A stretch of DNA of 64,000 nt from Raja brachyura (GCA_963514005.1 OY740795.1:992001-1056000); one strand, 5' to 3'; positions 11,970-62,937 are shown, counted from the first letter of the stretch. Numbers and translations: made by a program. Notes: a model not told the origin generated them from the sequence alone.

Positions 11970-12079
11970 TTACATCATCCAGACACAAACCGTCATCAGG
12001 ACATTGAACGCAATGCTCTTAAGCAGGAGGATCCTCAAAGCCATCAACGTCAGAGAGATAGCATTCACTTTTGATACAT
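11970..12079 (-). CDS. TRDC: TCR alpha/delta-type connecting peptide/transmembrane exon (xVSKVNAISLTLMALRILLLKSIAFNVLMTVCVWMM*)
   Basis: Acceptor TTGTTACAG, phase 1. Contains the TM Arg and Lys at the TCR alpha/delta spacing (R....K), plus KVN..SLT and FN.LMT motifs. TAA is followed by a G|GTGAG donor, and an AATAAA lies at 11900-11905. Confidence 0.9.
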
Positions 12080-12289
12080 CTGTAACAATGGAAAACATAN
12101 NNNNNNNNNNNNNNNNNNNNNNNNNNNNNNNNNNNNNNNNNNNNNNNNNNNNNNNNNNNNNNNNNNNNNNNNNNNNNNNNNNNNNNNNNNNNNNNNNNNN
12201 NNNNNNNNNNNNNNNNNNNNNNNNNNNNNNNNNNNNNNNNNNNNNNNNNNNNNNNNNNNNNNNNNNNNNNCACCCCTCTCTCTCTCGGT

Positions 12290-12649
12290 CCTTCGTTTGT
12301 CGCTTCGATATCCCACTTTCCTCCCCTATTTATTTTACATTTTTGTTTCTTCCTCTCTATCTTTCTTCGTTCTTTCCTTCCTTCCTTCGTTCCTTCCTTC
12401 CTTCCTTCCTTCCTTCCTTCCTTCTTACCTACCTTCCTTCCTTCCTTCTTACCTACCTTCCTTCCTCTTGCGTTATTTATCTATTTATTTGCCTGCTTAA
12501 ATATTTATCTACGTGCTTTTTTTGTTTTGTGTTCATTTGCTTGCTTATTTATGTATTTATCCATTTAGCTATTTATTTGCGTGTTTATCCTTTTTTGCCC
12601 TATTTACGTATTTATTTATCTCGCTCGCTTTCTTTCTCGTTTCCTTTCT

Positions 12650-12680
<31 letters not shown>

Positions 12681-12693
12681 GCTATCTCTCCCC

Positions 12694-12725
<32 letters not shown>
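12290..12725. repeat. Compound microsatellite (CCTT)n/(TATT)n/(CT)n/(AT)n next to the N gap 12100-12270
   Basis: Directly visible simple repeats. Confidence 0.9.
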
Positions 12726-12726
<1 letters not shown>

Positions 12727-12819
12727 ACCATATAACCATATAACAATTACAGCACGGAAACAGGCCTTCACGGCCCTTCCAGTCCATGCCGACCATTATT
12801 TTTCCCCTAGTCCCATCTA

Positions 12820-14082
12820 CCTTCCTCAAATTAGGAGACCAAAACTGTACACAATACTCCATATGTTGTCTCACCCGGGCCCTGTACAACTACAGAAGGA
12901 CCTCTTTACCCCGATCTCAAATCCTCTCGTTATGGCCAACATGCCATTAGCTATCATCGTTGCTTGCTGCACCAGCATGTTTACTTTCAGTGACTGGTGA
13001 ACAAGGACACCCAGGTCTCGTTGCACTTCCCTCTTCCTAATCTGACACCATTGAGATACTAAGCTGCCTCTTTCCGCCAAAGTGGACAACCTCACATGTA
13101 TCTACATTATACTGCATCTGCCATGCATCTGCCCACTCACTCAGCCTGTCCAAGTCTCCCTGCAACCTCCTAGCTTCCTATTCGCAATTCACACTGCCAC
13201 CCAGCTTTGTGTCATCTGCAAATGTGCTAGTGTTACTTTTAATTCCATCATCTAAATCATTAACATATATTGTTCATAGTTGCGGCATCAGCACCCAGCG
13301 TTGCGATTCTCCACTCGCCACTGCCTGCCATTCTGACCCGTTTATTCCTACTCTTTGTTTCCTGTCTGCCACCCAATTATCTATCCATGTCAATACCCTA
13401 CCCTCAATACCATGTGCTCTAATTGTGCCCACTAATCTCCTGTGTGGGACCTAATCAAAGGCTTTATGAAAGTCCAGATACACTACATCCACTGGCTTTC
13501 CTTCATACATTTTACTTGTCACATCCTCAAGAAATTCCTGAAGGTTGGTCAAGCACCATTTCCCCTTCATATATCGACGCTGAGTTGGACTAATCCTTTT
13601 ACTGCAATCCAAATGCGTTGTTATTACCTCTTTAATAATTGACTCCAGCATCTTCCCCCACCACCGATATCAGGTTAACTGGTCTATAATTCCCCGATTT
13701 CTCTCTCGCTCCTTTCTTCAAAGGTGTGATAACATAACAATGTGTTCTTGCCATCGATGAAAAAAAAAGGCCTTCTCATTTACACAGTTGACGCACAGAC
13801 TCGCAGAACCCAGCTCCAAGCAACCATCCAAGTACTTCACACAGAGAGTGGTGGGTCTCTGGAACTCTGTGCCACAGAGGGTAGTTGAGGCCAGTTCATT
13901 CGCTATATTTAAGAGGGAGTTAGATGTGGCCCTTGTGGCTAAGCGGATCAGAGGGTATGGAGAGAAGGCAGGTACGGGATACTGAGTTGGATGATCAGCC
14001 ATGATCATATTGAATGGCGGTGCAGGCTCGAAGGGCCGAATGGCCTACTCCTGCACCTAATTTCTATGTTTCTATGTTTCTA
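12820..14082. mobile_element. CR1 LINE fragments (minus 12820-13735; plus 3' end 13836-14082)
   Basis: PVDVVYLDFHKAFD on minus; FTQRVVGLWNS and a TTTCTATG tail on plus. Confidence 0.8.
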
Positions 14083-14115
14083 CTGTTTACAACTGCGCGG
14101 TTTCCCTGCCTCCAC

Positions 14116-14154
14116 CAAACTTTGACGTGATGCATTCTAAACGTTGATCGACAT
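14116..14154 (-). CDS. Candidate TCR hinge exon (xVDQRLECITSKF) carrying the interchain Cys
   Basis: TTTCATGCAG acceptor, 39 nt, phase 1 at both ends, one Cys, located between the C-domain and TM exons. The donor GTGGAG is weak. Confidence 0.4.
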
Positions 14155-60619: not shown

Positions 60620-60650
<31 letters not shown>

Positions 60651-60733
60651 ACCTCTTTCGCTCATGCGTACTACTCCAGGGTGTTTCCACTGCGCATGTC
60701 CTCATGTGAGTCTGTGGGCAGCTGCGAGGGAAG

Positions 60734-60813
60734 AGTTTTTGTATTGACATTTTTCACTGTGGGACTGGGGTACGCACGGTGACTAAAATGCCCTACGCCG
60801 CCGTACATAAACC
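60734..60813 (+). other. TRDD: TCR delta-type D segment 2 (coding 60762-60774 GGACTGGGGTACG) with 12- and 23-RSS
   Basis: AGTTTTTGT-12-CACTGTG | D | CACGGTG-23-ACATAAACC. Confidence 0.93.
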
Positions 60814-61103
60814 TCCCTACTGCAGCGCATTGACATCTCCACCACTTCGGTTCCAATTCCGCTTGCAAGCGGAAACCTTGTGGTTTCCTACTCTTGTCCT
60901 CGCCCTGCACTGTTCCGGTTGCCTGGATATTGATGGGGTTTTTTTTCCCAGCGCTGACACGTTTCCGCCGGATGTATGCTTCCTTGCCTCCTCCACCCAT
61001 TGGTCGAATCCCCCTCTCGCGGGGGGGTTCACGTCTGGTTGCGTTGCCCGTCGCTCATGTGAAACGTTCTGGGAAGTTTCTCTGCGGTCAGCAGCGAGGT
61101 GGA

Positions 61104-61181
61104 GGTTTTTGTATTGCCTTGTATCACCGTGACTGGGATACGCACAGCAACTAAACTACTATGAGCGGCCGTACATTAACC
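61104..61181 (+). other. TRDD: TCR delta-type D segment 3 (coding 61132-61142 ACTGGGATACG) with 12- and 23-RSS
   Basis: GGTTTTTGT-12-CACCGTG | D | CACAGCA-23-ACATTAACC. Confidence 0.93.
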
Positions 61182-61443
61182 TCTCCACTGCAGCGCCTCG
61201 CCTTCCAGTCGGTAGCTTGGTTAATATTCAGCGGTATTGCCAACATTAGACTGAAAGTTCTAATTAACGTTCATTTTTGTTTTTTTTAACCATTCGTTGT
61301 CTGTCGAGCGTACAGGGATCGCCAGATGATAGAGATAAACTCGCTCGCCAGACTAGTCCTATCATGAAAAAGCAATACGCACGGTTACCGGGAGATATGG
61401 ACGGAATCCAGACCGATCTAGTTAAAGTGAATGCAACATGAGT

Positions 61444-61485
61444 GGTCACAAGCTCACTTACGGGGAAGGAACAGCACTGTAAGTA
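61444..61485 (+). pseudogene. Possible J pseudogene (GHKLTYGEGTAL*)
   Basis: KL.YG.GT.L pattern ending in CT|GTAAGT; no convincing RSS. Confidence 0.4.
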
Positions 61486-62857
61486 CTTAATCTTCAACAC
61501 ACCCGTCTGTTATTCATTGTTATTTCACGATTGGAAAGTGGAACCATGCAGCATCGTCGATCGGGTATTTGTCCAGTCGTATTAGTTGGTTGAAGAAGAG
61601 TTGAGGACGGGAGTGGGGGGTGGGTTGTATCGCCGGGGAGCCGAGTAGATCGTCGCAGTCTCCTGTTTATCCAGTCAAGGTGGTTCGGTGAATGGTGTGG
61701 AATGTTTTCTAATGCACGTCTTCAAATACATTTACATGAACTGTCGAGCGAAGTTTGACCTCCAGGTGAACTGAAACATGGATGGCAATTTAGAAATACA
61801 TCCCAAACGCCCAATTCATAAAACAGCAGAATGCCCGTGTCCCTTCCACCTTCTTCCAAGTCGTTTCACGGCATTGCAATTATCGACCCGTCAACAACAG
61901 ATCTGCCCTCTCTGCATATGAAGTCTACTGATTGCATTGGCAACTGAACCATAGGAGATCAGAACAAACCGTGGAGACGCAAGGAGATGCAACTGTTGAA
62001 ATCTTGAGCAAAACATAAAGTGCTCAAGACTAGGGTGAATCGGCCAGTCAGGCAGTATCAGTGGACAGCCGACATTTCGGGTCTGGACCCTTATTCGGTC
62101 TTCCTGAACGTTCTTGTTTCCACGGGGCTGGTCTCGGTGGATCAAATGCACAAAGAAATGGCATTTAAGCATGTTTCGCCAAATGAAGTTTAACATTGTG
62201 GGAGATTGTTCAATGCAAGTTGTATAATGCTCCCTCTGAATACTAACACCCGACAATGTTGGAGAAAAATTCACAAATGATCGTTTGAAAGGTTCTGCAA
62301 ATTCGTCTTTTTTTACAGTATTTTGCATGCGACAGTGATGCATTATTCAGTTAACACTTTAAGAATTCACGCTGAAACGTGGGGATTGCTTTTGTAAAAT
62401 ACGACACTGCCTCACACAATCTTCCTTGACCTTAGCTGCTTAGCTCAGAAGCACAATTATAGGACGATGCCTCTAGTTCCACCGACAAGTGCACGGTTTA
62501 TGGAAGGTTGCGGCATTTCATTGGAAAGAAACTAACAACAGCTTTCCCGTTCATAGCCATGCTGATTCTTCTCTGAATTGGGATAGAAACACAGAAAATA
62601 GGTGCATTCGGCCCTTCGAGCCTGCACCGCCATTCAATATGATCATGGCTGATCATCCAACTCAGTATCCCTTACCTGCCTTCTCTCCAGACCCCCTGAT
62701 CCCTTTAGCCACACGGGCCACTTCTAACTCCCTCTTGTAGCTATTAATCGCTTATATTGACGTTTCCTGTTATGATGTTCATGGATAGTTTCATATTGGA
62801 TACAACGTGGCTCTGGGGCTTCATGACACTGGCGTCATGCGTCTGTGCTTTGGAATA

Positions 62858-62885
62858 GGTTTTGTTGTGGGGGTTTAATGTAGTG
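62858..62885 (+). other. 12-RSS of the right J segment (degenerate heptamer)
   Basis: GGTTTTGTT-gtgggggtttaa(12)-TGTAGTG; the essential terminal GTG is retained. Confidence 0.75.
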
Positions 62886-62937
62886 CAAAGAGAAAAGTTA
62901 ATATTCGGCGCTGGGACTGAACTCAAGGTGCAACCAA
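62886..62937 (+). CDS. TRDJ: TCR delta-type J segment (QREKLIFGAGTELKVQP)
   Basis: KLIFG.GT motif, A|GTGAGT donor in phase 1, upstream 12-RSS, located downstream of three D segments. Confidence 0.9.

Follow-up and report, generated by a model that had tools for sequence, protein, structure and literature searches.

A probable inverted V-DJ-C-delta mini-unit, dead as written, beside a normal-looking TRD D-J region of Raja brachyura

Introduction

How does a delta-chain receptor that carries an antibody-like variable (V) domain come to own a constant (C) gene? Antibody-like V domains on the T cell receptor (TCR) delta chain recur among vertebrates, as in shark TAILV and NAR-TCR, the VH-delta of frogs and birds (VH, antibody heavy-chain V) and TCR-mu. 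The question is raised again by a stretch of 64,000 nucleotides from Raja brachyura (GCA_963514005.1 OY740795.1:992001-1056000), called the window below, with positions counted from its first letter. A preliminary description of this DNA had seen two back-to-back TCR-delta-like mini-clusters, each headed by a V of immunoglobulin heavy-chain (IgH) type, and had taken them for a separate locus. Our analysis makes it probable that the window instead holds an extra, inverted mini-unit of V, joined diversity and joining (DJ) and C-delta segments, dead in this genome, which lies beside a normal-looking D-J region of the TCR-delta genes (TRD) in the alpha/delta locus.

In outline, the window would be a piece of the elasmobranch TCR alpha/delta locus. 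Its plus strand would carry the rearranging TRD region, with a TAILV-type V (V3) followed by a recombination signal sequence with a 23-nucleotide (nt) spacer (23-RSS), three D-delta segments and a J-delta, and this right-hand J would splice to a C-delta past the right edge of the window. The minus strand would hold an old, compact copy of a unit made of a VH-like V, D-J, C-delta and transmembrane (TM) exon, facing away. In that copy the D-J joint of its J segment (J1) would have been made by RAG in the germline, as is known for shark immunoglobulin (Ig) clusters. A single V-to-DJ joint by deletion would then be enough to give a delta chain with an antibody-like V, and inversion could still bring the two minus-strand V segments (V1 and V2) together with the D segments on the right.

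A compact unit on the minus strand

The preliminary description had read V1, J, C and TM segments on the minus strand. At exon level they are all present, with their RSSs and splice sites:

20934-21277, minus strand: V1, a VH-like V exon (21277-20973) with its 23-RSS, from structure search and RSS scan
18588-18645, minus strand: the 12-RSS of J1 and its 30-nt upstream flank (heptamer 18594-18588, nonamer 18615-18607)
18522-18587, minus strand: the J1 coding part, 66 nt, ..TNAQKNGKLVFGSGTALYVKP, with a GTAAGT donor, from sequence reading
15027-15335, minus strand: C-delta-type Ig-domain exon (309 nt, phase 1-1), its frame interrupted by TAA at 15231-15229 (..AAVCLLS*FFPKEIEF..)
11969-12079, minus strand: TM/cytoplasmic exon of the left C gene, ..ISLTLMALRILLLKSIAFNVLMTVCVWMM, with its stop at 11972-11970, then a GT donor

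The left unit thus has its own V, (D), J and C on one strand, and spans about 9.3 kb from V1 to the TM exon, a distance that includes two unbridged assembly gaps. The claim that an antibody-like V is paired here with its own C-delta in a cluster-type unit stands as far as the compact layout, the delta-type C and the VH-like V are concerned; it falls on intactness, with a TAA in the C exon and neither leader nor hinge exon found.

V1 carries a 23-RSS with the heptamer CACAGTA at 20972 and the nonamer AGAAAACCC. Exons were searched singly throughout. In the search of solved structures, every one of the top matches of V1 was an antibody VH, and the same was true of V3, the V of the plus strand, which bears out the earlier statement that both flanking V segments are IgH-like:

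40477-40525, plus strand: V3 leader exon, MEIAPYLVVVVLSRVF, GTGAGT donor, phase 1, from sequence reading
41130-41467, plus strand: V3 V exon (41130-41427) with its RSS (CACAGCC, 24-nt spacer, AGAAACACC)

V1 and V3 are mutually closest, with 52% amino-acid identity. In the gene models of catshark and basking shark, a VH-like V stands directly before J-delta/C-delta, and to this V both are 37-41% identical; their identity to ordinary delta V segments is only 25-31%. They are nearer to VH than to TCR V, as TAILV and VH-delta segments are, and both have a 23-RSS compatible with D-delta and J-delta and, probably, a position in TRA/TRD. A comparison of V1 with length-matched candidate proteins gave no match, and this search is uninformative.

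The leader claimed for V1 is the part of the V1 reading that did not hold, while the V exon and its 23-RSS did. No V1 leader exon was identified, and nothing resembling the V3 leader or promoter was found in the 13 kb upstream of V1. A SINE/LINE (short or long interspersed element) insert occupies the expected position of the leader. The only phase-1 candidate, MQGVLRVMLVNTK at 21904, was rejected for its poor hydrophobic core; it also lies on the wrong side of the single short match to the V3 intron.

J1 and a proposed germline D-J joint

The J segment of the left unit is unusual, and it is best seen against the D and J segments of the plus strand:

59341-59419, plus strand: D1, GGACTGGGTACG at 59369-59380, with a 5' 12-RSS and a 3' 23-RSS
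60734-60813, plus strand: D2, GGACTGGGGTACG at 60762-60774, with 12/23 RSSs, a tandem duplicate of the D1 block
61104-61181, plus strand: D3, ACTGGGATACG at 61132-61142, with a 5' 12-RSS and a 3' 23-RSS
62857-62937, plus strand: right-hand J-delta-type segment, with nonamer 62857-62865, heptamer 62879-62885, coding part 62886-62937 (QREKLIFGAGTELKVQP) and a GTGAGT donor

J1 reads ..KLVFGSGTALYVKP and has a perfect 12-RSS. This RSS and its flank show homology to the region that holds the 5' RSS in each of D1-D3 (84% over 50 nt by blastn, E 7e-7). In the 30-nt flank upstream of its nonamer, J1 is identical to D1 and D2 at 22 of 30 positions, more than D3 is to the same two segments (19), and the flank of the right-hand J matches J1 and D1/D2 at only 9-12 of 30. 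Identity of at least 20 of 30 in this flank is confined, across the window, to D1, D2 and J1. The 12-RSS pattern GTTTTTGT-N11-13-CACYGTG occurs four times in the window, with none expected.

The coding part of J1 differs as well. Its 66 nt exceed by 14 nt the 52 nt of the right-hand J (62886-62937, KLIFGAGTELKVQP), and the J-like part of both starts with CAAA. Because J1 has a D-type 12-RSS and flank together with this longer coding part, we propose that it is a germline-joined D-J, in which the J comes after a D remnant of about 11 nt. In such a joint the 5' 12-RSS of the D would have been kept, and the 3' RSS of the D and the RSS of the J would have been lost. J1 has the features that mark a germline-joined segment: the outer RSS of one partner is kept, the coding part is lengthened and the inner pair of RSSs is gone. 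The left unit would then not be truly D-less. A scan for paired RSSs found no D between V1 and J1 in the readable sequence. Isolated RSS-like sites at 19661, 19227 and 17784 are partnerless and were taken as chance. Germline coding joints are documented for Ig clusters of sharks and skates (PMC2193156, PMC2192082); for an elasmobranch TCR-delta unit, the literature searched yielded no account of a D-J joined in the germline.

A block of about 30 nt (..CAGC-GCGAGG..) before the nonamer is common to D1-D3 and J1, at 59311-59340, 60704-60733, 61074-61103 and, on the minus strand, 18616-18645. It may go beyond shared descent, for example as a D promoter or as an element that gives RAG access.

The constant gene is of delta type

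The TM exon of the left C gene reads MALRILLLKSIAFNVLMT, which has the alpha/delta pattern LRILLLK..FNVLMT followed by a stop and includes the conserved Arg and Lys (LRxLxxK..FNxLMT). It is 52-54% identical to the TM exons of shark C-delta by tblastn, and its acceptor lies 20 nt from the gap 12100-12270. For the C exon, the 67-residue part after the stop was used as query against a library of 1.84 billion representative proteins. This gave only three matches, from Heptranchias, Cetorhinus and Pristiophorus, all of them shark C-delta-type chains at 41-49% identity. The Cetorhinus match joins C to the V of NAR-TCR, a delta-chain form, and several Mustelus models from a later search do likewise. 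A search with a profile that contains the window exons brought in bichir proteins as well, under the name 'T cell receptor delta constant'. The C exon itself had no significant match among solved structures or in Pfam, which is no surprise in a short C domain that evolves fast.

The choice between alpha and delta was made by a published peptide signature, which is CLXXXFXP for trdc and CLXTD, then F or XF, for trac (Giorgetti et al., PMC10322711). The C exon reads C-L-L-S-stop-F-F-P, which fits the former, and the alpha signature is absent. With this signature, and with C-delta chains as its only relatives, the left C is of delta type, as had been claimed. Its identity to shark C-delta, 39-50%, equals the range seen between shark orders, and it is therefore not an unusually diverged paralogue.

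The left C does not stand in the canonical position, 5'-trdc-(traj)n-trac-3'. A motif scan of 1-11969, the 12 kb downstream of the TM exon, found no FGXG J-like element, in agreement with the statement that no J-alpha array follows. The hinge exon of the preliminary description was not recovered: neither tblastn with shark C-delta chains nor an exhaustive scan for AG..GT exons gave a hinge or connecting-peptide exon between C and TM in the readable sequence. The phase-1 AG..GT candidates with a Cys were rejected since all lie inside repeats. What is found in place of an open frame with a connecting peptide and interchain Cys is a TAA at 15231-15229 and no hinge exon.

Probable loss of the left unit in one lineage

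As written, the left unit is dead: a GAA has become TAA and a Tyr has become Cys in its C exon, and no leader or hinge exon is found. Contigs of four sequencing runs, each from a different organism, were aligned on 15020-21019. Run X1, from organism A, shares all sampled words and reads TAA like the assembly; TAA alone was seen, at depth 4. This run is not a plain copy of the assembly, because it differs at 18739 and 20319 (fixed) and, in part of the depth, at 17081. Besides X1, the runs that contain the C-exon stretch share 14-58% of its sampled words. In organisms C and D, position 15231 is C on the plus strand, which gives GAA (Glu), the residue of Heptranchias at that column.

Among the best-supported differences, six in the exon are common to organisms C and D, of which one is silent and five, including the stop, change the protein. 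One of the five is the change of Tyr73 to Cys (codon at 15119), an odd, unpaired Cys where shark C-delta has Phe or Met. Organisms C and D keep Glu and Tyr at the two codons. Most simply read, the unit has decayed recently in lineage A, and its relatives keep it intact at these two codons.

A high-copy repeat of about 1 kb (15432-16478) in the intron between J1 and C is absent from the contig of organism D, in which 15431 is joined straight to 16479. Because of this absence, the insertion is younger than the split from organism D.

The plus-strand region and V2

The preliminary description had placed a leader, V3, three D segments and a J on the plus strand. All are there, the D segments with 12/23 RSSs. 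The name 'mini-cluster' does not fit this side, where no C lies within the window and the layout is that of the catshark and basking shark models with a VH-like V, a J-delta and a C-delta. Because of this equal layout, the right-hand unit is most simply an ordinary TRD D-J region.

A tandem duplication of about 1.4 kb holds D1 and D2 (58900-59400 against 60280-60780); it has a long poly-C run (59240-59265 and 60625-60652) and a LINE fragment inside it. D3, ACTGGGATACG, differs little from human TRDD3 (ACTGGGGGATACG). Two further segments complete the set:

61450-61484, plus strand: J-like remnant, ..KLTYGEGTAL, without RSS and with a GTAAGT donor in the wrong phase
34725-35043, minus strand: V2, a conventional V exon, TCR V-alpha/delta-like (35043-34759); its 23/24-RSS (CACCGTA..CAAAAATAG) is weak and its leader doubtful

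V2 matches TCR V-alpha in the search of solved structures. It is the one further V described between the two units, at 35043-34759 on the minus strand, and no other V motif was found in the window. Its frame is open and its features are unusual, with WYRL for WYRQ, IYIC, the weak heptamer CACCGTA and no convincing leader.

Scans of the whole window found exactly three V-like exons and three J-like elements (motif scan, six frames) and exactly three D segments (scan for paired RSSs), with no further V or J motif. The DNA is that of a vertebrate, with many LINE/SINE copies. Left of the TM exon lie the two neighbours that the preliminary description had placed there:

4849-5757, plus strand: open reading frame (ORF) of 302 amino acids for a G-protein-coupled receptor (GPCR) of rhodopsin type (7tm_1, E 1e-12), GPR139-like
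9173-9562, plus strand: Tc1/mariner transposase-like fragment ORF, from sequence reading, with no Pfam match at E 0.001

The GPCR ORF begins without the first TM helix; it could be a pseudogene, or a further exon could lie upstream. With this GPR139-like ORF and a V-alpha-like V2 in the window itself, the idea of a separate locus finds no support here, and the window would more probably be an edge or part of the alpha/delta locus.

Weighing the explanations

Several points weigh against an extra unit that has died beside an ordinary D-J region. The D remnant in J1 resembles the Ds weakly, at about 6 of 12 positions. A D segment could sit in the gap 18873-19050, and a hinge exon could lie in the gap 12100-12270. 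The TAA may belong to a null allele that one individual carries, and need not be a fixed loss. Between species the exon has diverged slightly less than its introns (organism C, 4.3% in the exon and 4.6-5.7% in the introns; organism D, 6.1% and 7.1-9.6%), a difference compatible with selection and with its absence. The C exon was in none of the RNA runs searched, and the right-hand unit has no C of its own within the window.

Some of these points lead to a rival account, which is unlikely on balance and survives better than the others. Here the left unit would be a working second TCR-delta gene in the clade, a 'C-delta-2' mini-cluster with a dedicated antibody-like V, the TAA would be an individual's null allele, the hinge would be hidden in a gap and the leader would have diverged. 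The Glu and Tyr of organisms C and D agree with it, as do the intact splice sites, RSSs, structural cysteines (both) and TM motif. The unit is also kept in relatives, with contigs of the stretch in all four runs. Extra C-delta copies are present in other sharks: the gene models of Heptranchias perlo include two (P0001 and P0012) on one 1.7 Mb contig, 78% identical in the C domain, and those of Mustelus asterias include several C-delta-bearing models (P0004-P0011) on several contigs. However, run X1 shows only TAA at its depth of 4, five of the six visible exon changes alter the protein, and a repeat lies where the leader is expected. The RNA result tells against a working gene as well, and so does an exon that is barely more conserved than its introns.

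It is possible, if doubtful, that some elasmobranchs carry in the alpha/delta locus a TCR-delta mini-cluster like a shark Ig cluster, made of an antibody-like V, a D-J joined in the germline and a C-delta of its own, head-to-head with the main D-J region, which works in sister species and was lost recently here. Neither a compact inverted V-DJ-C-delta unit with a D-type J RSS nor the species-specific loss of one was found in the literature searched.

Very improbable is the converse arrangement, in which the minus-strand C is the canonical C-delta, the V array to its left is all minus-oriented and the plus-strand V3-D-D-D-J is an odd extra unit. The orientations in the window, with the GPCR ORF plus and V1 and V2 minus, could be read in this way, and the left C has diverged from shark C-delta no more than shark orders have from each other. 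Yet the V segments of the array would lie downstream of the left C, which has no D cluster before it, no J-alpha array behind it and a stop codon within it, and the D segments in the window are all plus-oriented.

The assembly has three runs of N in the window (17-241, 12100-12270 and 18873-19050), and the contigs between them are 242-12099 and 12271-18872. The gap 12100-12270 abuts a GA/GGAA repeat and the gap 18873-19050 a CA/TA repeat. For the latter no bridging contig was found among the four aligned runs, whose aligned stretch (15020-21019) lies clear of the gap 12100-12270. The single gap-free stretch 19051-64000 carries V1, V2, V3, the D segments and the right-hand J, so scaffolding does not account for V1/V2 facing the other way from V3. 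That the divergent layout is nonetheless an artefact, with the contigs 242-12099 and 12271-18872 misplaced or flipped and J1-C-TM being the canonical J-C-delta downstream of the right-hand D-J, is barely credible: these contigs are indeed bounded by the three gaps, one of them unbridged as just described, but V1, then J1-C, then TM share one strand and the expected order over two gaps, which random joins are unlikely to give, both gaps lie in simple repeats as local read drop-outs do, the contig of the TM exon has a GPCR gene and a transposon and no J-alpha segments, and V1 and V2 oppose V3 within one gap-free contig.

Comparison with known systems

If the left unit is an extra copy that decayed in one lineage, it can be set beside four kinds of known arrangement. 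The first is the shark TCR-delta translocon, within which nurse shark TAILV reportedly lies (work attributed to Criscitiello in 2010 and Deiss in 2019); the right-hand layout is said to be that of the nurse shark bacterial artificial chromosome that defined TAILV. PMC12227049 mentions TAILV, or the IgH-like V of shark TCR-delta. A VH-like V in the shark delta locus is already known. The window shares with the translocon a VH-like V with a 23-RSS beside D-delta and J-delta inside the alpha/delta locus, and with the catshark and basking shark gene models the order VH-like V, J-delta, C-delta. It differs in having two such V segments that face opposite ways, one of them with its own J and C.

Inverted V segments are a second parallel. 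Mammalian TRDV3/TRDV5 and the inverted V arrays of teleost TRA/TRD also stand opposite to D-J-C, which implies joining by inversion. In the window, by contrast, the inverted V segments lie upstream of the D cluster and are accompanied by their own J and C.

The germline-joined Ig clusters of cartilaginous fish resemble the left unit in having a germline coding joint that leaves one outer RSS, here a D-type 12-RSS before a lengthened J. Those cases are IgH and Ig light-chain clusters, whereas this is a TCR-delta-type unit. If the proposal for J1 is true, it would be the first case of a D-J joined in the germline to come from a shark TCR gene.

The galliform second TCR-delta locus, a VH-delta - D - J - C-delta cluster, and the TCR-mu of marsupials and monotremes, which also contains germline-joined segments, are compact units with an antibody-like V and their own delta-type C, and in this the left unit is like them. 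They are unlinked to TRA/TRD and expressed; the left unit would lie within the alpha/delta locus or at its edge, points the opposite way from the D-J region, and is broken here. Together with the C-delta copies of Heptranchias and Mustelus, the window suggests that the number of C-delta copies is fluid in elasmobranchs and may vary widely in sharks, a point that matters for models of the origin of TCR-mu-like and Ig-cluster layouts. The left unit is a plausible intermediate for such models: a duplicated V-D-J-C-delta block that germline RAG would have cut to a single V-to-DJ step, caught at its loss in one species and apparently intact at the same codons in relatives. If this is true, a working unit in a sister species would be the cartilaginous-fish counterpart of TCR-delta-2 and TCR-mu.

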